From Takakia lepidozioides (Eukaryota; Plantae; Bryophyta), in assembly GCA_030704615.1 (NCBI GenBank), contig CM060734.1:14942001-15006000 (forward strand): 64,000 nt of DNA, read 5' to 3'. A program made the translations under genes and the position numbers. The notes under the pieces were generated by a model. It worked only from the letters and a program-made list of their open reading frames with translations, had not been told where the DNA came from and searched no databases. Numbering within the stretch: position 1 is the first letter of the stretch; the number at the start of each line of letters is the position of its first letter. Below, piece after piece: positions 14,801 through 57,077 of the stretch.

Positions 14801-15259
14801 GCTTATATTGTAAGACTTGTGTCAACCTTTTTCGGGCAAGATTACGTTTACTAATAAGTAATGGAAAGTTAAACACTACTGAAGCAAACATAGAAATGGC
14901 TAAGAACTAAGGACCTGTGATCTCGATCGAAAAATTACAATTGACCCTAAACCCTTAACACGAAACGGGTTTGAATAAGTGTCATAATAGTTATTAAAAG
15001 CTAATTTTGTAGAATGAAATGATCCCGGAAGCCAGAGGAGGGGCTATGGGAGCATTCTGCAACGACTTCACAGAAATTGCAACAAAAAAATCCCCCCCAG
15101 CTAATGGCCTCCTTTTCCACGTGACTACGTATCGTGGAATAGTTACATGTCACGCACACAGAAGTTGTGTGGAGAGGAAGTGAGATGAGAATGAGCCTCC
15201 ATTGGCTTATCTGCCCCCCCCCCCAATTCCTCGGTCTACGCGCAAAGCATACCTTCTAG

Positions 15260-27512: not shown

Positions 27513-28200
27513 CACCTCATTCGCCATATGTTGAAAATACAAGTTCGTGCAAGACCTGGACTCTGCGTAATTGTTTCAGGTTTGCACGTCATGCCTATCC
27601 AGAAGCCACAATCGATTGATGTGGTACCATTTCACGAATTTTTTGCATCTCGCCATCGGCCATCGGAACTCTTCCGGAACATCCTCCCAGCCCTCTTAAG
27701 CTAGTATGTTAGGGTGACCAAATACTTCCCAATTCAAGTCTTGCCTTGACCCTTTGATTTTCTTAGGAGGCGGTCCATGTTCATTGGGGTCATCTCTTCC
27801 ATGACGGTCATCGTCTTGGCCCTGTGCTATTCTACAACAATCGGAGCAACACTAAATGAAGTTTTCTAAAAAGATGTAACTCTAAACCCTTCCCCCGTTA
27901 AGTAGGTTTGAGTAGGTGTGAAAATAATTCGTAAAAGCTAATTTTATAGAATAAAATGATCCTAGAAGCCAGAGGAGGGCCTATAGGAGCATTCAGCAAC
28001 GACCTCACAGAAATCGCGGCAAAAAATACCCCCCACCCAACCAATGGCCTTCTTCTCCACGTGACTACGTGTCCTGGAATAATGAAATGTCACGCACACA
28101 AAAGTTGTGTGGAGAGGAAGAGAGAGGAGAATAAGCCTCCCTTGGCTTATACCCCCCCCCCCCCGGCCCTCATTTTTCGGGCCACGTGCAGGGCAAATAT
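27513..28200 (-). pseudogene. Second copy of the 5' part and upstream region of the RING-associated TE gene
   Basis: Aligns by eye with ~14455-15260 (CACCTCA..GCAAGACCTGGA..TCCCAATTCAAGTC..GAAGCCAGAGGAGGGC). Confidence 0.75.
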
Positions 28201-28204
28201 TCAA

Positions 28205-28295
28205 AAAGTGACCGCCAACATGGCGGTCGCTCGATTTTCCGGAAAAAAAAAAAAAAAAAAACGACCGCCAGAATTGGCAGTCGCGCCATTTTCCG

Positions 28296-28331
<36 letters not shown>

Positions 28332-30900
28332 GCCAACATGGACGGTCGATTCATTTATAAAAAAAATTTTAAAAAGAAAGACCACGAACATAGACGGTCG
28401 CTTCATTTTCAAAAACTTTAAAAAAAATAAGCGGCCGCCAACATAGGCAGTCGCTTCATTTAAAAACAATTTAAAATAAATAAGTGACCGCCAGCATGGG
28501 CGGTCGCTTCATTTTCAAAACATTTAAAATAAATAAGCGACCGCCAACATGGGCGGTCGCTTCATTTTGAAAAACTTTAAAATAAATAAGCAACCGCCAA
28601 CATGGCGGTAGCTTCATTTTCAAAAACTTTAAAACACAAAAACCGACCGCCAACATAGGCAGTCGCTTCATTTTCAAAAACTTTAAAATAAATAAGCGAC
28701 CGCCAACATAGGCGGTCGTTTCATTTTCAAGAATTTAAAATAAATAAGCGACCGCCAACATAGGCGGTCGCTTCATTTTCAAGAACTTTGAAACAAAAAA
28801 ACCGACCGCCAACATAGGCGGTCGCTTCATTTTCAAAAACTTTAAAACAAAAAAAACGACCGTCTATGCTACCAGTCGCTTCAATTAAAAAATAAATAAA
28901 AAAATAAGCGACCGCCAGCATAGGCGGTCGCTTCATTTTCAAAACATTTAAAATAAATAAGCGACCGCCAACATAGGCGGTCGCTTAGTTTTCAAAAACT
29001 TTAAAATAAATAAGCGACCGCCAACATAGGCGGTCGCTTCATTTTCAAAAATTTTAAAACAAAAAAACCGACCGCCAACATAGGCGGTCGCTTCATTTTC
29101 AAAACATTTGAAATAAATAAGTGACCGCCAACATAGGCGGTCGCTTCATTTTCAAAAACTTTAAAACAAAAGAAGCGACCGCCTATGCTGGCGGTTCGCT
29201 TCATTTAAAAATAAAATAAAATAAATAAGCGACCGCTAGCATAGACGGTCGCTTCATTTTCAAAAACTTTAAAACAAAAAAACCGACCGCCAACGTAGGC
29301 GGTCGCTTCATTAAAAAAACATTTAAAATAAATAAGCGACCGCCAGCATAGGCGGACGCTTCATTTTCAAAACATTTAAAATAAATAAGCGACCGCTAGC
29401 ATAGGCGGTCGCTTCATTTTCAAAAACTTTAAAACAAAAAATCGACCGCCAACGTAGGCGGTCCCTTCATTAAAAAATCATTTAAAATAAATAAGCGACC
29501 GCCAGCATAGGCGGACGCTTCATTTTCAAAACATTTAAAATAAATAAGCGACAGACAGCATAGGCGGTCGCTTCATTTTCAAAAACTTTAAAATAAATAA
29601 GCGACCGCCAACATAGGCGGTCGCTTCATTTTCAAAAACTTTAAAACAAAACAAGCGACCGCCTATGCTGGCGGTTCGCTTTATTTAAAAATAAAATAAA
29701 ATAAATAAGCGACCACTAGCATAGGCGGTCGCTTCATTTTCAAAAACTTTAAAACAAAAAAACCGACCGCCAACGTAGGCGCTTCATTAAAAAAACATTT
29801 AAAATAAATAAGCGACCGCCAGCATAGGCGGACGTTTCATTTTAAAAACATTTAAAATAAATAAGCGACAGACAGCATAGGCGGTCGCTTCATTTTCAAA
29901 AACTTTAAAACAAAAAAAACGACCGCCAGCATAGGCGGTCGCTTCATTTTCAAAACATTTAATATTTAAAATAAATAAGCGACCGCCAACATAGGCGGTC
30001 GCTTCATTTTCAAAACATTTAAAATAAATAAGCAACCGCCAACATAGGCGGTCGCTTCATTTTCGAAAACTTTAAAATAAATAAGCGACCACCAACATAG
30101 GCGGTCGTTTCATTTCCCAAATAATTAAAATGAAAGCGACCACCAGTAATGGCGGTCGCTGCATCTCAAAAAATAACCATTACATCGACCGCCTGAAATG
30201 GCAGTCGCTGCGTTTTGTAAAAACAAAAACTGCGAGTAATGGAAGTGAGGGGAGAATGACTGGGGGCTTATATCCCCCCCCCCTTGCCTCATTCCTCGCT
30301 CCACGCGCTGGGCAGTCCTCGTAGAAGCGACCGCCACCATGGCGGTCGCTCCATTTAAAAACAAAAAAAAACAACCGCTCCAAATTCCCAAAAAAAAGAA
30401 AAAAAACGACCGCGAGTAATGGAGTTCGCTGCATTTATAAAAACAAAAAAGAACTTCAAGCGAAGTGAGGGAGAATGTCCCGGAGCTTATATGCCCCCTT
30501 CCCCCCCGCCTCACTCTTCGCTCCATGCGCAGGGCACACTTCGTAGAAGCGACCGCCACCTTGGCGATCGCTCCATTTTCATTTTCAAAACAATTCAAAT
30601 ATAAGCGACCGCCGACCGCCATAAATGGCGGTCGCTCCATTTCCAACCAAATTTCAATAAAAGCGACCGCCACTAATGGCGGTCGCTGCAATTACAAAAA
30701 ACATCAATAACGGCGACCGCCCCTAATGGCGGTCGCTCCATTTTGATTAAAAAAAACAAAAAAACGACCGCCAGTAACGGTGGTCGCTTTATTTCCAAAA
30801 TAATGACTGGGAGCTTATATGCCCCCCCCCTTCCTCATTCCTCGCTCCACGCGGAGGGCAGACTTCGTAGAAGCGACCGCCACCTTGGCGGTCGCTCCAT
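28205..30900. repeat. Homogeneous array of GCGACCGCCAACATAGGCGGTCGC palindromes
   Basis: Dozens of units, ~42-45 bp period, A/T spacers; same family as 15260-18190. Confidence 0.92.
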
Positions 30901-31199: not shown

Positions 31200-33860
31200 C
31201 GAAGAAGATCCTAATCCTAATGCTCCAATGGGTTGAAAATCCAGGTCACCCTCGACTTCACCACCGTTGCCATGATCAATGCTGGAATCGTCCTCCCTAT
31301 CCGACCTCATATGTCTAGGTGTCGCGCACCTCACTTCGGTAAGCTCCCCTTCAAGTCATAGTTACTCGCTCCGATGCGCGCGCCTGACTCCCAACCTGGC
31401 CGCCCGGGCCAACTTGGAGCTTCGGCTGCTCACCGGGACATAACGGTCCCCCCTTCGCTTCCCACTAAACCCTCCACCTATTTGGGCCTAGGAGAATTCC
31501 CTTTGGTAGATGGCAGTCCGGAACAGCTCCCCACTCTTTAGTCGCTTTCCGGCTCGTTCGCTTACTCACTAGTTTTTGGTCACCAACGGGCTTGCACCGT
31601 TCTCGGGGTCACTACTCCCCCTTATATATACTTCTGTAGCTGTCCGCGGGGGTTTCACAACCAGCCATGCCATTTTATGGCGAACCACCACGAAAACCCT
31701 CGACTCCCGGTGATGAGTCGCGGTGAGTCTTGGCCCACTCACCACGGCCCCTCTGGACGGTGATGAGTCCCAAGACTCCCCACGACTCCCACCACGAGGT
31801 CTCCGCCCCCATGGTGAGTCCTATGCCACCCCCACTAAGTCCCGCTAAGCTACCACCACCCCTTGTGGAGCCACCCCCACCGCAACCCGGTGTGCGGGGC
31901 TCCACCTAGTGAGCGCCTCCGCCTCCTTGAGTGCCTTGGGCACTCAAGGGTGCTTCAGCCCCCCATACCTATCGCTGCCGCTGCCCCCACCACAGGGGCA
32001 GCCCCTCATGTGTCCCGACCCCCTGCCCTCAAGGCAAAGGGCCGCGACACACACCCCTACCAACAGGGAGTCGATGTCCTCATCGACTTGTCCATTTTGT
32101 AGAAACGAACATCCAAGTTGTGGCGTCCCACATCAAGGAGTTTGTTTCCGTACCATGGCGTCCCATGGCAAAGAACCAAACCCCACACTTGACTCTACTC
32201 TCCACTAGCTAGTTCGGCCGACTTCCTCCAAGTCCCGGCCAAGGGTGGAGCCTCTCCAGCTCCTCCCAGTGCACTCTTCTTGGCCTATTTCAAGGCCAAG
32301 GAACGATCCTCCCCGAGGATCGAATCGCCTTACTGCAACAACATTGCTTGCGATCGCTCATGATGCCGCTTTTGGCATCACCTTGAGCAAGGGTTCCCTG
32401 GAACCCTCTTTGACTAGGAAGATAACCTTGAACCAACCGTGCGCCCCAATCACTACAATTGGGTCCGCCTTGGAATGCTGGCCTGAGGTACGGGAACACG
32501 CCGAAGCCGCACTACGACTTCGTCCCGAGGCTACACGATTATAGTACATGAACGGAAGCACGTAGCTTCCGCGTTAGCCCGCACTACAAGGCAACCCCCT
32601 CGGTAGCGCAGTTATAGTACACGCACGCGCCAGGTGCGCACTAGCACGTGAACTCCCAAAGAAGTCGCAAGTTTCCTTGCCCCTTGGATGGGGGTCATCC
32701 GATTTTGGCACTACGCAAACACACGATTAACCCAATTTACCTCTCCCACTTTTATAAGCTAGCATGCATTCTACACACTAGCCAACCATACCATGCATCA
32801 CCATTCCAAACAAAATAGGACGCACAACATTTGGAACCCATTTCCTTTATAACAAATTTTTGTACAATACAAGTTTTTGTAATCGGATTCCTAAGCTAGC
32901 TAAGCCGGGCTAAGCATGCATTTCCTCCCCCACGCTCCAAGGTTGATGTCCCCATCAACGTTTCTTCCGCTTTTGAGATCGCCCTTCGAAAGCTGCAACC
33001 GCCTCGGATGCATTTCCCATTTCTGAGGCACGCACCCAAGATGCCTCCACATGATGATAGCCCTTCCATTTGACGAGATACTCCGTTTCTCGGTTCTTGA
33101 ACCTCCTCGACTTAAGTATTGCCTCCACCTCGTACTCAGGTTTATTTTCATGATCCAACAGCATAGGTGGCGGACGCAACACTTGATGCCGATTCGGACG
33201 CGCTTCATCTTTGAAGTAAGGCTTCAAAAGGGAGACATGGAATACTGGGTGCACCTTGCTGTTTGCCGGCAGTTGTAGGTCGGAAGGCGGTGTTCATCTT
33301 CAGCCTCGTCCCCATCTTCTTCCAAAATGCCCTCCAAAATTTACTCGTAAACTTTGGATTGCGGTCCGAGACAATATCCTTCGGGACTCCATGATGCTTT
33401 AAGACGTGGGCGAAGTAAAGTCGCCCTGTCTCCTGCACCGTTGCCGTCTCCTTGGTGGGGATGAAATGGCCCATTTTACTGAACCTATCCCCCACCACCA
33501 TGATTGCATCGAATCCTTTTGACAGCGGCATAGCAGTCATGAAATCCATCGAGACGCTTTCCCAAGTCCCCTCTGGAATCAGCAAGGGTTGTAACAGCCC
33601 CGCTTGCTTTTTGTACTTGCTCCGGTTTCGTTGGCATGTGGTGCATGTCTTGACATACTCCTCTGCCTCCTCCCTCAGTTTGGGCCAGAAATACTCTTTC
33701 TTCAAGAGTGCCGCAGTGCGCTTGGCTCCGCCGTGGCCCGCAAGCGGGCTATCATGGCATTCTCTCAAGAGGCTATCTCTGATCCCTTCCTTCGGCACGT
33801 AGAGACGCTTTTGCTTATACCGGAGCAGTCCATTTTGCAAGTGGAACTGCGATTTAACCC
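31200..33860 (-). mobile_element. 3' part of a chromovirus (Ty3/Gypsy): integrase + chromodomain, PPT, probable 3' LTR
   Basis: Integrase and chromodomain ORFs; purine tract GGGGGAGGAAA (32921-32931) followed by TG at 32920. The left LTR boundary is uncertain. Confidence 0.65.
32955..33860 (-). pseudogene. Chromovirus integrase (HHCC, partial DDE) + chromodomain
   Basis: ECHDSPLAGHGG..CTTCQR..WESVSMDF..IVSDRNPKFTSKFW; HPVFHVSLLK; EYEVEAILKSRR..EYLVKWKGY..EASW. Confidence 0.88.
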
Positions 33861-36605: not shown

Positions 36606-36726
36606 TTCACTCTAACTCATGAGACGTTGGGACGCAAATGCCATGGGGCGTGGAATGCGAGCAATGGCCTTCACCTTTGTCTGTTGAACACTTAATCCTC
36701 CAGGATATATCATGTGGCCCAGATAC

Positions 36727-37335
36727 TCAATCTGATCGTGGAAGAACTTGCAGTTTCAACCCGTGCGCTCTCAAGCGCTCAAACACCACCTGAACGTGTC
36801 TCTCATGCTCCTCAACTATGGCACTAAAGATGATGATATCATCAATGTAGCACCGGGCAAAATCTAGCCCTGCAAGAATCCTATCCATGACCCTTTGAAA
36901 CTCTGCAGGAGATGGTGGTGCAAGATTGGTCCACCACAACCTAGGCCTATGTGCCTGTGACCCCACTGCAGCTGCATCCAATAGCACCGCCGATCCAATC
37001 CAAGACCGCACCTGATGCACACTGGCCATAACCCTGGCCCGAGAATTCCCCATAAGAGCAACGTTCTCCAAGATGTAAGCTGGAAGTCGCACTTGCCTCA
37101 CCTGCAAGTCACGCAACACTCGCAACATCTCCCAAAATAGATGCAATCGTGCATCATGCAAACCATTACCATGACTTGCGGGAGAATGTCCTTGGCAAGG
37201 CCATCCTGCTATCACCAAGTCAATGGAACCATGCCAGCCCAAATCGTCCGCCCCCAACATGGTAATGTTTGCTGGCAAGGCATTTTGGTACCCTTGAATT
37301 GCTGTGAGAGGCATCCTCCATCCGGGAGCTGCTGC
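36727..37335 (-). pseudogene. Gypsy pol fragment: DNMT3-like C5-MTase joined by deletion to RT
   Basis: DLVIAGWPCQG (motif IV), YILENV (VI), HRPRLWWTNL (VIII), then AEFQRVMD..CYIDDIIIFS (RT YxDD). Confidence 0.85.
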
Positions 37336-44679: not shown

Positions 44680-45836
44680 GTCCACGTGTTCATGTAAGCA
44701 GAGTTCGTGCTTTCATGGGGTTGGCAAACTACTATCGTCGGTTTGTCAAGGGATTTAGCAGCATTGCGAAGGCTCTTACCAAGTTGACCAAGGTGGGTTA
44801 GGAGTGGTAGTGGGAGGAGGAGTAGGAGCAAGCCTTTGAGGAACTCAAGGCTCGGTTGACTTCTGCGCCTATTCGGGGGCGGCCTTTCAAGCTACATAGG
44901 GATTACAGTATGTTGGGGATTGGAGCAGTGCTCACGGGGTGCTCACACAGGTGGATGACGAGGGAAGAGAGTTTGTAGTGGCATATGTCAGCCGCTCGAA
45001 CAATGATGCCGAGGCGAAGTATAGTTCATATGAAGGGGAGTGTCTAGCTGCAGTATGGGCAGTGACACATTTCAGATGCTACCTCTATGACAATCTCTTC
45101 ACCCTTGTCACGGATCACCAACCATTGAAGTGGTTGATAGAGTCAGACAAGCTTACAGGGAAGCTTGCACGGTGGGCACTTATGCTTCAAGAGTACGACT
45201 TCTAGGTGGTGCATCGAGCTGGTATAGTCAATCGGGATGCAGATGGGTTAAGTCGTAATCCATGCACAAGCGAGCATGATGATACTGGAGCTCAGTGACA
45301 TGGTGAGACGGATGAGGAGATAGTGCCAGGATGACATGCATCTGCCTTTTTGTGCATTCTAGCAATGGGAGCTCTGCAAGCTGGTCCATCCCATAGGATT
45401 GGTCATGTAGATGGTATGCATGACGATCCGGAGATCAGTGAGGAGCTTAGTGGTGCCAAGGATGTGAATGAAGATGCAGCACTATTGGCCTACCTTCGTA
45501 CCAGAGAGACAACAGCCAGTGTGACTGCTAAGGAGAGAGATCGGATCCTACAACGAGCCAAGGAGGTTCAAGTGGGAGGGGATTCACCTACTCCGTGTAT
45601 GGGAGAATGGACGAGTGAGGATTGTGCCTCACCCAACATAACGAGTGCGATTGGTACGCCATACCCATGAGGAGTTGGGGCATTTTGGGGTGCGGCGCAC
45701 TCATAGTTTGCTGCAAGGACAGTGTTGGTGGCGGGGCATGCACTCGGATGTGCAGCAGTTAGTGGCAAGGTGCATGATGTGTGATAGAGTGCAGGCTTCT
45801 TTCAACGCACCTACTCCACAATTGCATCCTTTACCC
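44680..45836 (+). pseudogene. Older degenerate Gypsy pol (RT connection, RNase H, integrase Zn finger); target of the split-LTR insertion
   Basis: FMGLANYYRRFVKGF; YSSYEGECLAAVWAVTHFR..TDHQPLKW; HEELGHFG..CMMCDRV..TPQLHPLP continues as IMDFGYRW after 56298. Confidence 0.88.
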
Positions 45837-46025
45837 TGTCGTGCGCATACATATCGCTACACAACTACATCGCTGTCCAAAACCACACAACACATGTGCA
45901 CACCACCCACTAGTATACCACTAGTCCACCACTAGTCCAACCACTAGTCCAACCACTAGGCTACAACTAGTCAGTCACTAGGCTGCCACTATGCTGCCCA
46001 CTATGGCAGTCACTAGTCCACACAA

Positions 46026-46542
46026 TGATAAAGAAGAAGAATACAAGCACAAGCTCATGCGAGCTCACAAAGCTGAAGCATAAACTCATGCATATATAAC
46101 CTCATCACTCAAATACAAGTCAAGCCAAGTGCACCCCACGCCATGGGGAATCCACACTACGGCGCCATAGCTAGGCGCGGTGAGGCTCAACTCGAGAAAG
46201 ATGAGCCTCCCGCGCTTGCCGTGAAGATAACCACTCCAGGGCCTAAATCTGCCTTGACCCCTGGATTGACACTTGGGCCAATCCCAAATGTCAATATGTA
46301 AAAGCTAGCTATTTCCTAGCTAGTTTCACAGTAGTGGTAAAATAACTTGACAGCTGTCGTGCGCATACATATCGCTATACAACTACATCGCTGTCCAAAA
46401 CCACACAACACATGTGCACACCACACACTAGTATACCACTAGTCCACCACTAGTCCAGCCACTAGTCCAACCACTAGGCTACAACTAGTCAGTCACTAGG
46501 CTGCCACTATGCTGCCCACTATGGCAGTCACTAGTCCACACA
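46026..46542 (-). repeat. Complete 517-bp 3' LTR (TG...CA) containing the central palindrome GACAGCTGTC
   Basis: Minus strand TGTGTGG...TTTATCA, directly after the PPT; palindrome at 46349-46358. Confidence 0.88.
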
Positions 46543-46554
46543 ATCGCCCCCCTA
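46543..46554 (-). promoter_or_regulatory. Polypurine tract
   Basis: TAGGGGGGCGAT immediately 5' of the LTR TG on the minus strand. Confidence 0.75.
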
Positions 46555-46802
46555 GCTGGTGCTTAGGTCCCTCTAAGTCCAGGTAGCCACAAGATGTGAT
46601 AGTGACCATAGCCTCACTAAGTCCTCCACCATTATCCCTACTACACTCAAACTCGATAGATCAAGAGGCCGGGTGCAAGAGTTGCCCCATCATTAGTCGC
46701 CGTCTTGCAACCTGTGAACTTGAGCTTGGGATCTCATGTATTGACTCCTATGAGCTTGGCCTCCCATGTCTTGTTAGCTGCCTCCAGTCATGTCCACTGC
46801 CA

Positions 46803-48113
46803 CTATCCCAAGCAGTGTGGACACAACCAATCTCCGTCAGGAACCTTCTCAAGAGGTGGTGGCAAGCATCCCATATGCCAACCCCTTGAGCATCGATCAC
46901 ACACCAGCATGGTGGCTGCCCCTTTGGCAAACCCACAGAGCATGCACCTCAAACCTGCAGGTACCACTGCCAAGTTTGGGTCAACTCTACCATCGACATT
47001 AGGAAGGTGACATGACGCACAATTACGCACATGGTCCTTCCAAGTCATGCCATCCCGACCCTCCAAGATCAGGACCCCTGAGGGCAACACCTCTCGAACC
47101 CTCAGAATAACACGCCCTGCAGTAACATCCAGAGTCGTAGGAGCAGTCTGCTGCAAATAAACATAGTCACCAGGGCTAATCCTTCGAACCCCAGGATGAT
47201 ATCCTCCACCACGTATAGTGGCATACCTCAACGTATCACGATGCTGTGCAATGGCAAGGTTCTCAAAAGCCATGGGCATGACTTTCTTGAACAACTCTGC
47301 ACGCTGATCACATGCACGTACCCACACGTCCGGATCGTCAAGGTTAATGACTTGAGCAGTGTCCCTACGAATGGCTGTAGGCAAATCCGGCTCTCGGCCA
47401 AAGAGAAGGAAATATGGTGAGAAGGAGGCAAGTGATGCTTGTTTGCTGAACCTGTAGCCCATGGTTAACCAAGGAACATGAAGATCCCAATCTCCTAGGT
47501 GTCCCTTCTGCAAGCCATACTTGCGCAAACCCCTCTTCACCGTCTGAACAACTCTCTCTGCCAAGCCATTGGCCTCAGGATGATCCCGAGAAGTGGTGCG
47601 GTGGTCTATCAAGGCTTTATTACACAAAGCCTGAAACTCCCCCAAGAACTCTCTCCCTTGGTCCGTGAGTACCTCAGCTGGAGCACCAAATCGGCTAAGC
47701 ACACGATCCAAGAATGCATACGCAGCCCCCTCACTAGCCTTGTCAGGCAATGGAACCAACTCAATCCACTTGGAGAAGTGCTCCACCATCACCAACACAT
47801 ATCTGTGGTGACGCATAGTCAGTGGCAACGGTCCTGCGAAGTCAAGACTCCACCTGTAGCCCAATCCCATGATTGGTAAAGGATGCAACTGTGGTGTAGG
47901 GGTGTTGAATGAAGCACGCACCCTGTCACACACCATGCACCTAGCCACGAACTGTTGCACCTCTGTATGCATACCACGCCACCAATACTGCCCCTGCAGT
48001 AAACTGTGAGTCCGTCGCACTCCAAAATGCCCCAACTCCTCATGGGCATGCCGCACTAACCGTGCACGCTGTGTGGGGTGAGGCACAATCCTCACCCGAC
48101 CATCCTCCCACAC
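46803..48113 (-). CDS. Gypsy integrase with C-terminal PHD finger
   Basis: HEELGH..CMVC (HHCC); LDFAG/TDQG/AER (DDE); CMLC..VCDRC..WHMGC..WLCPHC (C4HC3 PHD). Confidence 0.93.
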   Translation of the reverse strand: MWEDGRVRIVPHPTQRARLVRHAHEELGHFGVRRTHSLLQGQYWWRGMHTEVQQFVARCMVCDRVRASFNTPTPQLHPLPIMGLGYRWSLDFAGPLPLTMRHHRYVLVMVEHFSKWIELVPLPDKASEGAAYAFLDRVLSRFGAPAEVLTDQGREFLGEFQALCNKALIDHRTTSRDHPEANGLAERVVQTVKRGLRKYGLQKGHLGDWDLHVPWLTMGYRFSKQASLASFSPYFLLFGREPDLPTAIRRDTAQVINLDDPDVWVRACDQRAELFKKVMPMAFENLAIAQHRDTLRYATIRGGGYHPGVRRISPGDYVYLQQTAPTTLDVTAGRVILRVREVLPSGVLILEGRDGMTWKDHVRNCASCHLPNVDGRVDPNLAVVPAGLRCMLCGFAKGAATMLVCDRCSRGWHMGCLPPPLEKVPDGDWLCPHCLG

Positions 48114-48531
48114 TCAAAAATAGGTGTATCCCCTCCCACTTAAACCTCTTGGCTCGTTGTAGGATCCGATCCCTCTCCCTGGCAGTCACAGTGGCTGCCG
48201 TGTCTCCCGTGCGGAGGTAGTCCAACACAGCCGAATCCTCATGTATATCTCTGGCACCACTTGGCTCATCACTAGCCTCAGGGTCCTCAGACACTCCGTC
48301 TACAGTCATCCCTGTTGTAGGTCCAACCTGACCTCCCGATGCCAAGATACACAAAAATGCAGATGCGTGCCATCCCAACATCATCTCCTCGTCCGTCTCA
48401 CCATGCCACCGAGCTCCAGTGTCATTTTGCTGGCTCGTGCGTGGATTGCGACTCAATCCATCCGCATCCTTATTGACCAAACCCGGTCGATGCACAACCT
48501 AAACATGTCTCTCATGCTCCTCCACCGTAGC
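48040..48531 (-). pseudogene. RT/RNase H deletion junction and RH-IN linker
   Basis: ATVEEHERHV (RT) fused to VHRPGLVNKDADGLSRNP (end of RNase H). Confidence 0.75.
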
Positions 48532-48724
48532 ACAAGAGGCAAAGCAATTCCTGCAAGCCTCAGGAACCGCCGTATACGTCGTCTCTCTCCTCTAGTGACA
48601 ATAGGTCCAATGTCAGGCTCTCAATTGTCCTCCGTAACTGCAACCTTAAGTCCAGCAGACTTAGAGGTAGAGGACGCGTCCCGTGGTTGCTATGCTGCAA
48701 CCTCTTGAGCAGTACTCTCTACCT

Positions 48725-49216
48725 ACTCAGTCAATGTTGCAGTAGTTAGTGGAGCCTAATGCTGACAAGCATGAGCGAGCAATGGGTTTTACCACTGGTA
48801 CCACGGCGGTGTCGTCTCTTTCTGAGGCATCACGTCGTCAAGTGTTGGGGCAAGCAATGGATCTCAATTGCTTGACCTGGATTATCAGCTTGTCTATGGC
48901 TAAGCAACGCAAAGTGCGGAGTACACTTCCCTCGATGGTCTCTCTGCCTACCGAGACGGTACAGGCAGTGAGTGGGGGCGAGCTGGTGAGGACCACATGG
49001 CGAAGTCATCCATGGCACACGTGGGAGGTGCTCGAGGTTCAGAGGGAGTTGGCAACCAAGGCAGCTGTGGTAGATGAGGTTGGGGATTCTTCTCGGGTTG
49101 AGGAGGTCCTCAATGATGAGATGATGGGGCAGGATGAGGTCTTGATTACCTACACTGCTCAGCTTCCCAGGATCGCATGCTTTCCGGGATAGTGGACCTG
49201 GCCTCCTGTGGGATGC
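48725..49216 (+). pseudogene. Inverted, scrambled C-terminal part of the DNMT domain
   Basis: EPNADKHERAMGFTTGTT..RRQVLGQAMD (motifs IX-X) and SFPGSHAFRDSGPGLLWDA lie on the + strand, opposite to the element. Confidence 0.7.
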
Positions 49217-49981
49217 TGCTCGTGGTTGACCTACCTTGTTGACCACTGCCAAAGGCGAACGGTCATCGTGTCTCATACACTGAGACTGCCTCCTTGTGTC
49301 CAGAATGCCATCCACTATGAGATGTGCTGGCCGCTGCACCCCATCAAATGCACGCTTGAGCAGTGCGGGTGGCATCAAGTTAGTCCACCATAGCTGTGGA
49401 CGATGAGCCCGTGACCCCACTGTAGCTGCATCTAGCAACACTACTGACCCAAGCCATGACCGGACTTGATGCACACTGGCCATCACCCTAGCCCGAGAAT
49501 CGCCCATCAGTGGCACATTCTCCAAGATGTATGCTGGAGATACAGCTTGATGAAGCTGCAAGTGGCGCAAAACCCGCACCATCTCCCAAAACAGACCCGA
49601 CCTCGAGTCTCGCAATCCATTGCCATGCCCGGCTAATGAATGCCCTTGGCAGGGCCAACCTGCCACTACCAGATCAATGGAGCCAACCCGCTCCAAATCC
49701 TGCGCCCCCAGCAACGAAATGTCTGCTGGCAAGGTCTGCTGATATCCATGAATTGCAGACACCAACAACAACTCAGGGTACCGCTGCACCAACTGAGCAA
49801 CATGGCAACGTGAAACGCGTCGTGTAGTCTCATCCCTCTCCACATACAGGTAACGTCGAACTCGTACACCTGCCTGTAACACAACAGCCAATCCGGTGCT
49901 GATCCCGCCAAACAAGTCCAGAAGACAAATGCCTTCATCCGGATACTGCCACACAATAGGTGTGGTGTCCAATGGAGACAA
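49217..49981 (-). CDS. DNMT3-like C5 cytosine DNA methyltransferase domain of the retrotransposon pol
   Basis: LDLFGGISTG (I), YVERD (II), DLVVAGWPCQG (IV), YILENV (VI), HRPQLWWTNL (VIII). Confidence 0.9.
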
Positions 49982-50991
49982 CTGAGGTGGTCCTGGTGCA
50001 ATCCCCGCACTCTCCTCCTCTCCTGACGGTACAAAGCCTCCACCCAGGCTTGTTGCACCCGTCGATCAGCATCCCGTTGCACATCCTTGCTCGTGCCCCA
50101 CAATGGAGTCTGAGCAACCATGGTAGGCAACTCCGCCATACCATACATGTCATCCTGCTCTCCCGGAGGTGGCACATCCTCTGAATGAGCGTTGCCCTCA
50201 AGCAACTCTCTAGGCCAACTCACTGCCGCTGTGAATGCTGCTAGTGTCGGCATCTTGCCTCGCTGGACAACCGCAACTCCTCCTATGAACGTCACAGGGA
50301 GCTGCACACGCCGGCCCTCCCTTGACTGCCATGCAGGCCTATAGGAAGCTGACTCCTCCCAGAAATCCAAGGTGAAGCTCATGGGGTACAACACTGCCCC
50401 GCTAACCAGGACATCATATGAGACCGCGTCTGTCACAATGGCCTTGGCTCGCATCACTGAGCCCTCTGTAGGGTGATCCGGCCGTAGTCTGATAGCCAAC
50501 TCACGCAGTGTCATGCCGCGAGCCTGCTCCGATCCTCCCAGAGACGTCTGTATCTGGAAAGGACAAGGCTCCATATCCGCCTCCGTGAGGCCCAAGCCTG
50601 CAATAGCAGCTCTGCCCAGCATCAATGGCTGAGCTCCCGAGTCCAACAAGACCCGCAGTGGCCGGTACCTCTTGCCTGCTGGTCCACTCAAACAGAAAAT
50701 GCCATCCTGGTTGTATAACATGACAACTCCAGGTGTCACCATGGCGCGCTCAATGGCTGGCCTAGCTGACAGCTCCATCAACCTGGCAGCTGCAGCTTGC
50801 CATGGCGCCGCCGTGGCAGTCTTGACCCTCAAATCCGAGGATCCCTCCGGCACTACACCTCCCACTATCTCCGCAGAAGATGAAGTAACCTCCCCACTCT
50901 CACAGAATGTAGCTGCCAGCCTGAACACCTCAGCTGGTCTTACCCCCAGCGTCGCAATCATGGTAGCCGAGAACAATAGAGCCTGGCACAC
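49982..50991 (-). CDS. Retroviral-type aspartic protease region
   Basis: RVLLDSGAQ catalytic motif; YDVLVSG downstream. Confidence 0.8.
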
Positions 50992-52826
50992 AGATGTGGC
51001 CGCACACTAGTTGTCGTAGCCTTGGCAACATTAGGTAGTGGTGCTACCCGTGTAGCTCTCCCCAATGGCATAGTAACCTCCGCCTCGATAACAGCCGGGC
51101 GAGAACTAGGTGTCATGGATGGCGTCGACACTGTCTCCGCCAATGTGAATGACTGAGGAAGCCTAGCCTGACGGCTTGCCTCCCCACGCTGTGGATCCAA
51201 CTCCACCTCTGCACCTCGTGGCTCAGGAACTCGTGCTCCTCGAGTCACGGCTGCAGCAGACTCCACCTGCACTAGTGGTAGTGCTGCTCCACACATGAAT
51301 CCCATGCCTCCCATATCTCCTCCCTCAGGAGCAGGAGGTGGACCATCCGGCCTTAGAGCCGGTACTACCTGAGCTGTAGCCATGGCAGCGAGCCTCTGCT
51401 CTAGCTGCTGAAGCCGGTTGGCCATGCCTTGGTCAACCCCTTGACCTCCGCGTCCTTGGCCATGTTGAGCTTGCCCTTGGCCTGCACCTCGTCCTCTCTG
51501 GGCTGCTCCACCTCGCCCCCGGCCACCATTGTTCCCTTGGAACTGGCCTGGGCGCAACTTAGGATGCAAACCATAACACTGGGCCTCTCGATGCCCGTGC
51601 TTGCCACAATGCCCACACTGCAACTGTGCAGGCTGTGCATGTGCCGGCCCTTTGCCTCCCTCTGGGCAATCCTTCTTGACATGGGGTCCTCCACACGTCC
51701 AGCACACCACATCCGCCCGTTGTTGCCCAGCAAATGAAGGGAGAGACCCTTGCATCTGAGGTCCTCTCTGCCCTTCCCTGAGCTTCACCTGAGCCCCCTT
51801 GTTACGTTGAGGTAGTGGTTGGCTAGGAGCACCACTACCCCGTGGTGTCTCCTTAGCAAATCCCACCATGACCACTCGTTCCTCCACCATGTTGAGCTCT
51901 ATCCGCTCTGCCAGCAAAAACACATTTGCTAAGGTGGGTTGGGCCGCTTGTAGGAGAGTTGCATCCCGCACCCTTCTCCTCAGCTCCTTGTCCAATATCC
52001 CATACCAGAATTGGACTGCCTGAGCTTCCGTAACCCCTTGGGTTACATTTATCAAGCGCCTCATGCGAGTGAAAGCCTCCCTCAAGCTCTCAGTCGGCTT
52101 CCGTTGGAACTCTTGCAAGCTCCGCAACTTCTCTGTCCTCACCCCTTGGTAGTTCCCTCTCAACTCTTCGAAGAACTCCACAACAGGGTTGAAGGCAGGC
52201 ACGGGTGCTAGTGCTGGTGCGGTAGTGGCTTGGGTGGACGTCGTAGCTACTGTACCACCAGTCCCACTAGTCCCACTGCTACTTGCTGAAGCTGCCGGTG
52301 CAGCGGCAGGTGTAGCCACTGCCCTCGTGGCTCTAGTGCCCCTAGTGATGGAGACATAGTCGGGTGACCAGTACATCCTCCACTCCTCGATCTCAACCTC
52401 ATGCCCCCGCCTGAACTCATGGTAATCATCCATAGGCGGCCCCTCAAGGTGCTGAAACAGCCCCTTCCATGCCATGAAAGGCGTAAATAGTTGTGGATTG
52501 CGCATTTGCTGCAAATCACACCAACTATCAAACTCTTGGATAAAATCATCCAACTCGATGGTGCCCACCGCCCCAGAGTACCCTCGTGGCCCCTTGGTAG
52601 CTCCATACATCTCCTCCATTGTGTCCCACAACAATGGCAAAGAAACAACTTGCACCGCCGGTATGAGTCCTCTTGATTCACAATCCGAATCAGAACCTTC
52701 AGTAGAAGACACAGGAGGTGAAGGTGGCCTAAACCGCACACCTCGTCTCGTGTACCCACTAATATTGCTAGTGCTCGAACCGGCACTGTCCCCAGCAACT
52801 AGTGGCACCTCCGTGTTGACACTCAA
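50958..52826 (-). CDS. Gag with two CCHC zinc knuckles
   Basis: Retrotrans_gag-like LRSLQEFQRKPTESLREAF; CWTCGGPHVKKDC and CGHCGKHGHREAQC. Confidence 0.88.
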   Translation of the reverse strand: MSVNTEVPLVAGDSAGSSTSNISGYTRRGVRFRPPSPPVSSTEGSDSDCESRGLIPAVQVVSLPLLWDTMEEMYGATKGPRGYSGAVGTIELDDFIQEFDSWCDLQQMRNPQLFTPFMAWKGLFQHLEGPPMDDYHEFRRGHEVEIEEWRMYWSPDYVSITRGTRATRAVATPAAAPAASASSSGTSGTGGTVATTSTQATTAPALAPVPAFNPVVEFFEELRGNYQGVRTEKLRSLQEFQRKPTESLREAFTRMRRLINVTQGVTEAQAVQFWYGILDKELRRRVRDATLLQAAQPTLANVFLLAERIELNMVEERVVMVGFAKETPRGSGAPSQPLPQRNKGAQVKLREGQRGPQMQGSLPSFAGQQRADVVCWTCGGPHVKKDCPEGGKGPAHAQPAQLQCGHCGKHGHREAQCYGLHPKLRPGQFQGNNGGRGRGGAAQRGRGAGQGQAQHGQGRGGQGVDQGMANRLQQLEQRLAAMATAQVVPALRPDGPPPAPEGGDMGGMGFMCGAALPLVQVESAAAVTRGARVPEPRGAEVELDPQRGEASRQARLPQSFTLAETVSTPSMTPSSRPAVIEAEVTMPLGRATRVAPLPNVAKATTTSVRPHLCARLYCSRLP

Positions 52827-53479
52827 CCGGTCATGAACATGTCCCTAACCCCCTCTCCACAAGGTAACCGGGTAGAGAACCTGGTGCGGCTTAGGGTTTG
52901 GAATACTAAGTTCCTAACATAGCCTACACCTGTACCTGCATCCACCGCAAGCACTCCTATGGTTGGCTGGTCATCACCTCCAACCTCACCACAGGAGAAA
53001 CAATGATGGTCTGGCTGGTCATCACCCCAGCCTCACCATCGACAGCATGCTCTAGGACTGGCCGGTGATCAAATCCGGACCAATCACCTATAAAAACAAG
53101 CGCCCACACAAAACTAGCATGGCGCACAGTCAAGCATGCAGGTATGGAGGGGATCCAAACACAAGAAATCAAAACGACAACTCCCCCACACCAAAAACAA
53201 CTCCACGGTGCTGCTCCTGCAAGGACACCCCAGCCCAAAACCCGGACTGACTCTTACCTCCACCTACGGAAAGGTCTTGGCCTAATGAGAGGGTGGAAAC
53301 TACGAGGAAGAGAAGCTAAAGCAATGCCTAACCCCAGCATGCCCTCATCCCAACACTCTTCCTCTCCTCTCTTCCCTCACTTGCATGACCATGGGAATAT
53401 CATGAAGATACTCCTCAAACCGCCCTCCACGAGCTTCAAAATTCGGCCTTCAAGACCACATACCAGTCCTTATGCAGTC

Positions 53480-54405
53480 CACCAGTGCCTCCACAAGTCA
53501 GCACAGGCCATCCACAGGTCAACACGGGCCACCACAGACCAGCACAAGCCCACACAGCTCACAGGCCACAGCCTGTCACAGCCCTACACAGGTCACAGGG
53601 TCACAGCCCCAAAGGCCACATGTCACAGCTTGTCACACCCCATCACAACCCCAAAGGCCACAGGCACAGCCTGTCACAGCCCTACAAAGGTCACAAGGTC
53701 ACAGCCGCAAAGGCCACAGCCTATCACAGCCCCTCACAGCCCCATAGGCCACAGGGCACAGCCTGTCACAGCCCGACACAGGTCACAGGGGTCACAGCCC
53801 CAAAGGCCACAGCCCCTCACAGCCCGTCACAGCCCCACAGGCCACTGGCCACAGCCTGTCACAGCCCCTCACAACCCCTCACAGCTCGCCACAGCCTGAC
53901 ACAGCCCGTCACAGCCCCACAGGGCACAGGGTACAGCCTGTCACAGCCCCTCACAGCCCGTCACAGCCCCACAGGCCACAGGGCACAGCCTGTCACAGCC
54001 CCTTATAGCCCGTCACAGCCCCACAGGCCACAGGGCACAGCCTGTCACAGCCCTTCATAGCCCGTCACAGCTTGCCACAGCCTGTCACAGCCCGTCACAG
54101 CCCCACAGGCCACAGGGCACAGCCTGTCACAGCCCCGCACAGCCCGTCACAGCCCCAAAGGCCACTGGGTCACAGGCCCTCACAGCCCGTCACAGCCCCG
54201 AAGGCCACCGGCACAGGCCCTCACATGCCCTCACAGCCCGTCACAGCCCGAAGACCACCGGCGTAGCCCGGCACAGCCCGACACAGCCCGTCACAGCCCT
54301 GAAGGCCACCGGCACAGCCCCTCACAGCCCCGAAGGCCACCGGCACAACCCCTCATAGCCCGTCACAGCCCCCAAGGCCACAGGGACAACCCGTCACAGC
54401 CCCAT
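53480..54405. repeat. CACAGCCC/GGCCACAGG minisatellite in the 5' leader of the Gypsy element
   Basis: Degenerate 10-11 bp units; the same array occurs at 25513-25683. Confidence 0.9.
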
Positions 54406-55955
54406 CCATGGCCGCTCTGGCAGTTTAGCCATTTCTCCAAGGGGTTTAGCCATGCCAAGCTAGGGTTTGTGTCTCTTGGACTCTAGGCTTCTTTCCACCG
54501 AGCTATGGCGGCTGTGAGGAAATCAGCAAGGTATTCTTGCTCTTTCGGCTCCCACACACCACCATAGTAGCCCTAAGCCATGAGGTGGTTGCCACAAACC
54601 AAGCCTTCTTTCTCACTTAGCCTCCCCAAACACGCCACTAAACTCAATGGCAAACAACCAAGCCCTGCTGGTTCCCAGCCCTTGTGAGCACTCATTCAAG
54701 CACTTTCATTGGCCATAGCATCTGTCTTAGAGCCTATTCCAGCCCTCTACACCTGTTGCTTCAAGAGTTGCGCTCCCTTCAAGCTTGAAGTTGAAACCCC
54801 AACTCACATAGGCCCTACAAGTGCTTTTCTTTCACTCCAAGTGGAAACCAGCCCTAGACCTTCCGTTCTAGCTCTCTAAGGCTTGAAAACAAGAGCCTCA
54901 ATGGGCTGAAGGCATGCTCCACACATGCCCCACTCTCACCATAAGAGAATCAGCTCATTTGCTTCATTTCTTGCACCCACAAACCTGAAAATACAAGCTT
55001 CAGCAGGCTGAAAGCATGCTCCACCTGCCCTACAGGGAAACCAGCCCCTTCCTTCCTTTCTTGCACTCCCACACTTGAAAGTGCAAGCCTTCACCAGGCT
55101 GATAGCATGCTCCACACATGCATTGCCCTCACATAAGGGAAGTCAGCCCTTCCCTCTTCCTTGCTTGCCCTCCAAGCTTGAAGATAGAAGCTTCAATGAG
55201 CTGAATACATGCTCCACACATGCAACCTCTTCACACAAGAGATATCAGCCCCCTATCTTGGCTCCTTGGCTCCTTGATGCTCTCTAAGACAAGACTAAGC
55301 ACTCCACAGCCCTTGCCAAGCTCCTGAAACCGTAAGGCTTATATTTCCAGCCACAAGACACTCCTCTTGTGGTGCAAGAACTTTTCTTCCAAGCTCTGAA
55401 ACCCTAGGTGCACATTCCATGGCCTTGCCGCACCTCTTAGCTCATGTTCCAGCCCCGCTCTTGCCATGGCAAGAGCCCTCATATCGCTGGAGTTTCAGAT
55501 TGAAACCCCAACTCAACATAGCCACAAATGCATTGGCTTGCATACAAGAGAAATCAGCCATCTCTTTTCACTCATACCTCCTTATGAGCTTGAAGTTGGA
55601 GCTCCCGATAACTGTGACTTACATTTAACACCCTCGCAGCTCCACATTGCTGCAGCTCCTTAACTTGGCCTGCAGCTGAAGAAGACGACCACCAGTTCAC
55701 CCACTCGAGACCAGCATCTCCCCCGCTTCACACTAGAAGCCCAAACTTGGTTGCCATAGCGTTGAGCTATGCAACGCCGCTCTTCAACATAGGCTACCCG
55801 CCTCTCTATCCATTGCAAACCTGCAACCTGTTCGCCTTTGCACTCTATCCACTTTGGATAGGCTCATGCACGGATCCCTGCACTCTAGGCTGAACCGCTT
55901 CTCATGAAAACACAAGTGCTACAAAGCAACTCGAACCTGGCACTCACAGACTCGA

Positions 55956-55971
55956 GCTGATCTTTCTCGAG
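55956..55971 (-). promoter_or_regulatory. Self-priming-type primer binding site
   Basis: No TGG tRNA PBS; CTCGAGAAAGATCAGC pairs with an LTR segment at 56137-56152 (15/16; 15/15 in the copy at 27168-27182 vs 27348-27362). Confidence 0.7.
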
Positions 55972-56298
55972 TGATAAAGAAGAAGAATACAAGCACAAGC
56001 TCATGCGAGCTCACAAAGCTGAAGCATAAACTCATGCATATATAACCTCATCACTCAAATACAAGTCAAGCCAAGTGCACCCCACGCCATGGGGAATCCA
56101 CACTACGGCGCCATAGCTAGGCGCGGTGAGGCTCAACTCGAGAAAGATGAGCCTCCCGCGCTTGCCGTGAAGATAACCACTCCAGGGCCTAAATCTGCCT
56201 TGACCCCTGGATTGACACTTGGGCCAATCCCAAATGTCAATATGTAAAAGCTAGCTATTTCCTAGCTAGTTTCACACTAGTGGTAAAATAACTTGACA
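55972..56298 (-). repeat. 5' LTR half (B) forming the right terminus
   Basis: Near-identical to 46026-46352 (one mismatch seen); stops exactly at GACA of the palindrome. Confidence 0.92.
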
Positions 56299-57077
56299 AC
56301 CCATTATGGATTTCGGCTATCGTTGGACTTGTTGATTGTCCATTGCATACTTGAGCATGTGAGCAAATCTTTTCTGTGATCCAATTTGTATAAAATGACT
56401 GATATTGTTGGTTGAAAATTGTGGCAACTTAGCCAGGGATACTTGTAAATTATAGGTGTGGCAGATCAGATGAAATGGTTGTTGGTGTGGTGGAAAGTGT
56501 GAACATTCTGGTTAACAGCAATAGCCAGCTAGTGTGCTCTGATGTTGTTGGTGCCTTGAAGATGCGGACATATTTGAGGTAACATATACGAGTTCCTTAT
56601 TTGTGTTTTCTCACTTTCTGGTCAACAGCGATCGCCAGCCAGTGTGAGCACTCTAATATTGTTGGTGCCTATAAGATATGTACATATTTGAGGTAACAAA
56701 TACTCCTTGTTTACTATGTAAATAACGGATGCACCAAAACTGAAGAACACTTCTTCTTTTACTGCCCTCTTTACTATGAGATCCGTGGGAGAAACCCAGT
56801 ATCTCACAACAGTCTTCCACTATGATGGCAGCTTATCTGCATGAAGCTTTGATCTTATGCAATCCCTTGAGCAGTAGTTGCTTTTGGGCTGTCTTTTATT
56901 CTGTTTCTTGTTTCTTGTCTTCCTTTTGTCCCATGTAAGCTCTTCAGCTTTCTGCGGATGTTATAAAATTCCATTTCATTTCTGCATGAATTTCATTCAG
57001 TAATTTCCCTCGAAGAGGAGCTGTGAAACTCTACGAGTTTGTATTGAAGTTCATCAATGGGTGGTAGGTTCCTACAG

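Follow-up and report, generated by a model that had tools for sequence, protein, structure and literature searches.

The stretch of DNA analyzed here (the window) comprises 64,000 nucleotides of contig CM060734.1 of the moss Takakia lepidozioides (assembly GCA_030704615.1, positions 14,942,001 to 15,006,000), and it contains, at 45837-56298 on its minus strand, a retrotransposon whose long terminal repeats (LTRs) are permuted. This element is a young member, deleted for reverse transcriptase (RT), of an old streptophyte lineage of Ty3/gypsy retrotransposons which carry a cytosine-5 DNA methyltransferase (DNMT) within pol and whose DDE integrase (IN) bears a PHD finger. Repeat finding and direct reading give its order, in the orientation of the element, as B-PBS-gag-pol-PPT-[A-GC-B]-T-A, where PBS is the primer-binding site, PPT is the polypurine tract, and A and B are the two parts of an LTR of 517 bp (A, 188; GC, 2; B, 327) that begins with TG and ends with CA. 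The 5' end carries B only (B1), and the complete LTR at the 3' end (A1-GC-B2) is followed, through a CA-T-TG junction of one LTR to another, by a further copy of the missing part (A2). The features of the element and of its surroundings are listed in Table 1.

The termini of the element are TGTC...GACA, and they are flanked by a 4-bp target-site duplication (TSD) that reads ACCC on the plus strand. On the minus strand, the GGGT flank at the 5' boundary is followed directly by TGTCAAG, the start of B1, which ends in TATCA, and at the 3' boundary the end of A2 (...CGACA) passes directly into GGGT. The two termini are the halves of a palindrome, GACA-GC-TGTC, that lies between A and B in the complete LTR. 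The insertion has split the integrase open reading frame (ORF) of an older element of 78-82% nucleotide identity, which lies in the opposite orientation. When the element and one ACCC are removed, this target reads ...PQLHPLP/IMDFGYRW and aligns without gaps to the family's own integrase (TPQLHPLPIMGLGYRW; PQLHPLPIMGLGYRW), which indicates that the insertion was clean and that the element ends lack the GC at the centre of the palindrome. An earlier note on this DNA had described the structure of the element, and its account has held up: its layout is correct to the base, and the 517-bp LTR with the CA-T-TG junction, the ACCC duplication at ends formed by the palindrome halves with GC lost, and the restored target ORF were each recovered as it had stated them. 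Over its 327 positions B1 has 1 mismatch to B2, and A1 has 3 mismatches to A2 over 188 positions; these mismatches identify them as separate copies and not as a duplicated assembly block. Palindromes of 10 bp are expected by chance about 0.5 times per 517-bp LTR and are therefore not rare; the non-random features are the coincidence of this palindrome with both insertion ends and its conservation across lineages.

Table 1. Positions of the retrotransposon, its second copy and its insertion target within the 64-kb window of Takakia lepidozioides.
Feature	Position	Strand	Remarks
PBS of copy 2	27168-27182	-	Same as that of the window element; directly after B
B segment of copy 2 (truncated element)	27183-27512	-	92% identical (8% diverged); starts TGTCAAG; unrelated flank
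RNase H and integrase N-terminus of older related element	44856-45836, resumes 56303-56330	+	Insertion target
TSD, left copy (ACCC)	45833-45836	.	Same ACCC at right end; single copy restores host integrase frame
A2, terminal partial LTR (LTR nt 1-188)	45837-46024	-	Ends ...GCGCACGACA at insertion boundary; 98.4% to A1
Junction nucleotide x = T	46025	-	LTR-LTR junction, U5 end (..TATCA) to U3 start (TGTGTGG..)
CA and TG flanking the junction T	46026-46027 (CA), 46023-46024 (TG)	-	Direct reading
B2, last 327 nt of complete internal LTR (rest of U3, R-U5)	46026-46352	-	99.7% to B1
Palindrome GACA-GC-TGTC, GACAGCTGTC	46349-46358	.	Proposed internal attachment (att) site; direct reading
Central GC	46353-46354		Inside palindrome of complete LTR
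A1, LTR nt 1-188 (5' part of U3)	46355-46542	-	Starts TGTGTGG, ends CGACA
PPT AGGGGGGCGA	46544-46553	-	Just upstream of LTR; CTAGGGGGGCGA motif also in relatives
Integrase ORF	46803-48113	-	H2C2 zinc finger, DDE core, C-terminal PHD finger; Pfam
RNase H, C-terminal remnant	48118-48498	-	tblastn; RNase H of a relative matches at residues 119-254 only
Cytosine-5 DNMT ORF inside pol	48830-49981	-	PF00145, E = 1.7e-12
Protease-containing ORF	49666-50991	-	LLDSGA motif; weak Asp_protease_2, E = 0.0027, below curated cut-off
gag ORF	50958-52826	-	Zinc knuckles CX2CX4HX4C; weak Retrotrans_gag, E = 0.0031, below curated cut-off
Array of about 55 ten-bp units CACAGCCCGT	53532-54403	.	Long 5' untranslated region; also in copy 2, ~25514-25700
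PBS CTCGAGAAAGAT	55960-55971	-	Directly after B1; exact complement of B positions 151-162
B1, sole LTR part at 5' end	55972-56298	-	Starts TGTCAAG at insertion boundary
ATCTTTCTCGAG in B1	56137-56148	-	PBS-complementary; likely transcript 5' end (putative self-primer)
TSD, right copy (ACCC)	56299-56302	.	

The integrase ORF matches the Pfam families PF17921 (E = 5.6e-17), PF00665 (E = 5.6e-14) and PF00628 (E = 1e-9), the D, D, and E motifs are seen in its translation (SLDFAG, TDQGREF, and HPEANGLAER), and a PHD finger stands at its C-terminus in place of a chromodomain. The first two of these matches establish the DDE integrase that the earlier note had proposed; this integrase is intact, and no Phage_integrase match, i.e., no tyrosine recombinase, was found in any ORF of the element. 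The DNMT domain is placed by tblastn between protease (PR) and RT/RNase H. The relatives described below carry RVT_1 and RNase H between DNMT and integrase, and the RT of a relative, used as a tblastn query, found no match inside the window element. The region 48113-49400 has lost RT and half of RNase H, and it contains a piece of about 170 bp that is inverted relative to the Calypogeia relatives. The window copy, which was analyzed as it stands, is thus non-autonomous, and since its repeats are nearly identical, it was probably mobilized recently in trans. The PBS and pol of the earlier note accordingly stand in part: the PBS is present but is complementary to B instead of being a tRNA site, and pol lacks RT. 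As for the characters of Ty3/gypsy elements, a PPT before the 3' LTR, a PBS after the 5' LTR part, and the pol order PR-RT-RNase H-IN with a DDE (rve) integrase are all found, the place of the RT deleted from the window copy being taken from relatives. Complete identical LTRs at both ends, with integration at their edges, are absent from the window element, and its PBS is of a self-complementary and not of a tRNA type.

A second, truncated copy of the family lies on the same strand of the window and has the same 5' end as the element described above (Table 1). Its flank (27513-27846) has an 85%-identical paralogue at 14457-14790, which runs on past the insertion point, and the similarity between the two stops exactly there; this confirms the 5' boundary of the second copy only, the copy being truncated at ~25514 with loss of its 3' end and TSD.

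Close homologues of the integrase are found in Calypogeia fissa, Riccia sorocarpa, Marchantia, Sphagnum, Klebsormidium, and among many metagenome proteins, and copies from four genome assemblies and from one metagenome set of 80 loci were compared with the window element (individual loci are given below as L numbers). A common 3' structure, in which the PPT is followed by A...CGACA-GC-TGTCA...B...-x-A...CGACA (x being the junction nucleotide) and then by unique flank, is shared by Riccia (L003) and Calypogeia (L002), a second Calypogeia family (L090), the Sphagnum fallax reference (L087), two copies of Klebsormidium nitens (L084 and L088), and approximately 24 of the 80 metagenome loci, each of which has a different flank after GACA. 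The same structure is present in a distant family of about 52% integrase identity (L077 and L078), where the centre of the palindrome is GT (L078) or AC (L077). In long-read or reference assemblies all 7 of the informative 3' ends are A-B-A. Where both ends of a copy are visible, perfect 4-bp TSDs are present in 9 of 10 copies, with a chance of 1/256 for each match. They flank both the copies of the form B-int-AB-x-A, where int is the internal region (window, ACCC; L087, ATCT; L011, AAGG; L066, CATA; L010, TCTC; L077, ACCT), and copies of the form B-int-A (L015, TACA; L056, TGTG; L083, TACA); the imperfect case (GGTT vs. TGTT) is a short derivative, L006. Tabulation of termini and TSDs was the check that the earlier note had set beforehand, and copies with conventional ends were to count against it: the relatives exhibit TGTC...GACA ends, 4-bp TSDs and the B-int-AB-x-A form, the second copy has the same 5' end, and no complete conventional 5' LTR occurs among at least 13 5' ends inspected. 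Its inference at the level of the family is thereby supported.

Several loci are less informative. In Calypogeia, the 5' B of L002 has been cut off by a partial duplication and no TSD is readable, L001 is a degenerate copy with a partial A only, and in L089, where PPT-A ends GACA/TAAG, the element is interrupted by another young repeat and no B1 is present within 10 kb. Neither A/B repeats nor the palindrome were found in the Marchantia (L085) and Haematococcus (L086) homologues, which may be degenerate or domesticated, and a scan of viral contigs with the integrase gave no match. One Sphagnum-type locus, assembled in three samples (L054, 3361-3878; L055, 1412-1929; L069, 1283-1798), has a complete LTR after which, in place of x-A, the initial 180 nt of B are repeated in inverted orientation; it may represent a head-to-head or hairpin-like aberrant product.

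The sequence CGACAGCTGTCA, or a variant of it that differs by one transition, is present at the A/B boundary in the Riccia, Calypogeia, Sphagnum, Klebsormidium, and metagenome relatives, where it forms an island of identity in LTRs that otherwise do not align between these lineages; the table of core conservation was anchored by a pattern search, and part of its signal arises by construction. The edges of the LTRs differ between lineages, viz. T-TGTGTGG...TATCA in the window, T-TGTAG...GATTA in Riccia, T-TGGTG...TTGTA in Calypogeia, G-TTGTGG...TTTTCA in Sphagnum, ATAGTG...TTCAC in Klebsormidium, and ACATGAG...TTCAAT in L077, so that they are TG..TA in Riccia and Calypogeia and of a non-TG..CA type in Klebsormidium and L077. 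The permuted ends, in contrast, are invariably TGTC..(G/A)ACA. Retroviral-type DDE integrases need a CA-3' at both ends, and with LTR edges that vary in this manner, CA-3' at both ends is constant only at the permuted ends. The internal palindrome is very likely the dedicated integration site of this family.

The origin of the x-A block can be considered from the placement of the priming sites. With the PPT immediately preceding A1 and the PBS immediately following B1, LTR-type reverse transcription should give A-GC-B at both ends of the cDNA, and in its ordinary form it cannot copy x-A2. The junction nucleotide x is the one that lies between PPT and U3, viz. T in the window, Riccia and Calypogeia and G in Sphagnum; in the window element, the T at 46543 between PPT and A1 is the same as the junction T at 46025, as is expected if the left end of the cDNA keeps one nucleotide from the PPT side. 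The junction reads CAG in most Sphagnum copies, and in some copies it carries indels with a retained end of the PPT (CGAG or CGAA). At L010 (10838-10858; the same locus as L014) there is a 17-nt insertion that resembles the end of B, followed by PPT-derived CGAG, and this junction looks like a product of imprecise end joining. Indel heterogeneity of this kind is known for the junctions of 2-LTR circles. A1 and A2 are distinguished by no class-specific substitutions, and subfamily variants are shared by the A1 and A2 of one copy, which indicates that both are made from one LTR in each cycle; the identity of A1 and A2 of one copy, as compared with that to other copies, is uninformative on this point, the Sphagnum copies being old and star-like. 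The identity of x with the nucleotide after the PPT, the indels, the lack of class-specific substitutions, and the shared subfamily variants all fit a junction that would be made anew in each cycle by the joining of two cDNA ends. The simplest carrier of such a U5-x-U3 junction would be a 2-LTR circle, and concatemers or a cut followed by joining would give the same product.

The 5' end of the element is also informative with regard to its replication. The 12 nt that follow B1 can pair without mismatch with B positions 151-162, this complementarity extends to 15 nt in the second copy, and in Sphagnum (L087, 3474-3489) a different sequence of 16 nt pairs at B position 164. Complementarity of 12-16 nt at these positions (151/164) has chances of about 2e-5 and 8e-8. 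The pairing between PBS and B thus covaries between the window element and Sphagnum, which suggests self-priming as in Tf1, with the paired segment as the start of the transcript. If priming occurs in this way, R-U5 is expected to consist of the last ~175 nt of B, and B1 would keep ~150 nt upstream of it, the region in which a core promoter is to be expected. With a transcript start inside B, a 5' end that consists of B only would still be transcribable.

In textbook LTR-retroelement integration the two ends of a linear cDNA are used, and circles are regarded as dead ends. The structures described above point to a different route, which we infer to be as follows. LTR-type reverse transcription, with its PPT before the LTR and a self-priming PBS, would yield a cDNA with two full LTRs (A-GC-B), and its two ends would then be linked in a U5-x-U3 junction, for which a 2-LTR circle is the simplest form. 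The integrase would cut CGACA/GC/TGTCA about 190 bp inside the 5' LTR, 3' of each CA, and this cut would leave recessed CA-OH ends with 2-nt 5' GC overhangs, like a retroviral end after 3' processing. These ends would be inserted with a 4-bp stagger, and loss of the overhangs in gap repair would account for the missing central GC. The resulting B-int-(A-GC-B)-x-A would stay replication-competent, as its transcript would start in B, at about position 151, and its internal full LTR would give the next cDNA a whole U3 and a fresh palindrome. We assign a probability of roughly 55% to the reading that this Ty3/gypsy lineage integrates obligatorily from joined-LTR (circular) cDNA, via a dedicated att palindrome in U3 and a restriction-like cut by the integrase; the chain of steps as a whole, circular intermediate included, appears on balance probable. 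Unless it has spread horizontally, the lineage would date back at least to the divergence of Klebsormidium and the land plants.

A number of observations weigh against integration from a circle. A circle contains two equivalent palindromes, and B-x-AB-int-A should therefore be as frequent as B-int-AB-x-A; however, it is found in 0 of at least 12 5' ends, as against 7 complete B-int-AB-x-A copies. The alternative form B-AB-int-A that the earlier note had predicted is thus never seen, and its absence does not follow from a simple model in which either palindrome of the circle is cut. The circle may itself be just the simplest source of the U5-x-U3 junction. About 21 of the metagenome loci are B-int-A only and lack a full LTR, and 3 of these (L015, L056, and L083) have perfect TSDs; they may be products of 1-LTR circles, of linear cDNA cut at both palindromes, of A1 x A2 recombination, or of short-read collapse. 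If they are not collapsed, they may be genuine insertions that were dead on arrival. The metagenome loci with A only were not counted as a separate class, a short-read collapse of the B-x-A loop being possible. A solo B-x-A of Calypogeia fissa (L090, 1660-2233, minus strand) has an AC insertion at its junction and no TSD (GAGT vs. ATTC); it may have arisen by recombination between elements and correspond, in this family, to a solo LTR. Further, the genome of Takakia is represented by only two copies of the family, both of them in the window, and the protein collection searched contained no 100% match.

An alternative that yields an identical integrated structure, TSD, and junction heterogeneity starts from linear cDNA, in which the integrase would cut the 5' LTR at its palindrome and insert both halves from one intasome, the host joining the cDNA ends later; or else the substrate is a cDNA concatemer. 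Linear cDNA cut at both palindromes would also produce the B-int-A form directly. However, cutting before joining requires that at each insertion a chromosome break be bridged by two free cDNA ends, and it explains the missing B-AB-int-A form no better than the circle does. We regard this alternative as unlikely, although it and the circle are inseparable by sequence data. Less likely again is that the split repeats are encoded by the template, as in PAT, Ngaro, and DIRS elements, so that the whole B-int-A-GC-B-x-A is copied and the DDE integrase inserts a linear cDNA that already ends in TGTC and GACA. The topology is identical to that of A1-int-B1-A2-B2 split direct repeats, the strict orientation of the copies follows naturally from such a template, and the CAG junction of most Sphagnum copies accords with it. 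The PPT before A1 and the PBS after B1, however, are those of ordinary LTR replication, by which x-A2 cannot be copied, and there is neither a purine tract nor a primer site at the palindrome. In addition, A1 and A2 lack the class-specific substitutions, close copies differ by indels at the junction, and the element has no tyrosine recombinase and no internal complementary region.

Two further explanations concern the window copy itself, and both are highly improbable. The first regards it as a one-off, either the aberrant insertion of a 2-LTR circle or a chance pseudo-end, and it draws on the facts that such circles are usually dead ends and that a palindrome of 10 bp is no rarity by chance in an LTR of this length. 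It is already refuted by the second copy, which has the same 5' end, and by the related copies, dozens of independent insertions with TSDs, in which these termini and this palindrome recur across at least five species or lineages. The other is that the A-B-A block arose when part of the LTR was duplicated in assembly. Repeats of this size do misassemble, and in some metagenome contigs the block may have collapsed; however, there are 3 mismatches between A1 and A2 and 1 between B1 and B2, the TSD and the host ORF are clean, and the block recurs in the assemblies of Sphagnum, Riccia, Calypogeia, and Klebsormidium, which are independent.

The repeats of this lineage have been noted before. For KnitGypsy-Dnmt3 of K. 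nitens, a figure legend (Fig. 4c of de Mendoza et al., 2018, PMC5890265) equates the layout of the repeats with that of a DIRS retrotransposon; this work reports the family from K. nitens only, and it does not deal with termini, TSD, palindrome, PBS/PPT, or mechanism. A 2026 preprint mentions streptophyte Gypsy-DNMT3 and does not discuss its structure, and our search found no further paper that uses the name KnitGypsy-Dnmt3. The window element and this family share the domains of Ty3/gypsy elements, a cytosine-5 DNMT within pol, and a DIRS-like A-coding-B-A-B arrangement, the IN-PHD region of the window element is 55-56% identical to KFL_005000010, KFL_015960010, and KFL_001420210, and the two K. 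nitens copies (L084 and L088) have the palindrome and the A-B-A block; the assignment of the window DNMT to Gypsy-Dnmt3 is based on PF00145, its position in pol, and IN-PHD homology. The window copy differs in that it is RT-deleted and a recent insertion. The odd repeats of the Gypsy-Dnmt3 lineage were thus already on record, and the window element is a new, liverwort-type member of it. What is new, as far as we have found, is the proposed att palindrome inside the LTR, the TSDs of 4 bp, the junction between LTRs, the putatively self-priming PBS, and the range of the lineage, which extends from Klebsormidium to mosses and liverworts. Split direct repeats have otherwise been described for tyrosine-recombinase elements that lack TSDs, and the view of the earlier note that they are known only from such elements is out of date in the light of the Klebsormidium family (PMC5890265).

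The family can be compared with several known systems. PAT-like elements, Ngaro, and TOC1 (DIRS order) share with it the topology A1-internal-B1-A2-B2 and a putative intermediate that is closed or circular, but they have a tyrosine recombinase and no TSD, whereas a DDE integrase, 4-bp TSDs, and PPT and PBS around a true LTR are found here. The integrases of foamy virus and HIV-1 cleave the palindromic junction of 2-LTR circles (PMC1180852, PMC1905944, PMC4372172), and integration from a circle junction was the model of Panganiban and Temin (1984), which has been abandoned for retroviruses (reviewed in PMC11054761). The route proposed here is alike in that a DDE integrase would cut a twofold-symmetric CA...TG site in circular cDNA. 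In retroviruses, however, the palindrome is the U5-U3 junction itself, its cleavage does no more than regenerate the ordinary linear genome, and this route is of minor or contested importance, whereas the palindrome of the Gypsy family is situated about 190 bp within U3, integration gives a circularly permuted product, and the route is apparently the normal one. Tf1/sushi elements are comparable in PBS complementarity: the window PBS is complementary to its own LTR and not to a tRNA, and the pairing covaries between lineages; the complementary segment is here a predicted RNA 5' end. With conventional Ty3/gypsy elements (Metaviridae), the family shares gag-PR-RT-RH-IN (RH being RNase H; in relatives), a zinc-finger and DDE integrase, a PPT, and a short TSD; it differs in the partial LTR at the 5' end, the full LTR with the missing part at the 3' end, the integration ends internal to the LTR, and the added DNMT and PHD domains. 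Our search of the literature found no described circle or palindrome integration route for LTR retrotransposons.

Some additional features of the window deserve mention. A DNMT-RT piece of a related Gypsy element is present at 36684-37308 and a 28%-identical integrase at 33337-33798, both on the minus strand, and the window is a nest of such Gypsy elements. A tandem array with a 53-bp period (~40 units of 60-85% identity) occupies 28155-30200, and related short arrays are found at 15200-16700. In many units of the ten-bp array within the element the sequence is CCTGTCACAGCC, which is similar to one half of the proposed att palindrome; these units may be integrase-binding repeats, or the resemblance may be due to chance.

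In several plant lineages, dozens of independent insertions have their ends inside the LTR and contain an LTR-LTR junction. If the circle route is true, the family would provide a tractable natural system for the study of palindrome-directed internal cleavage by a retroviral-type integrase, and would amount to a naturally functioning form of the circle-junction model that was abandoned for retroviruses. The architecture of split direct repeats could then arise without a tyrosine recombinase, by an independent and convergent origin, and extrachromosomal circular DNA of retrotransposons could be a productive intermediate. It would likewise explain misreporting by LTR finders, in counts of solo LTRs, and in LTR-based dating in the genomes of bryophytes and charophytes.

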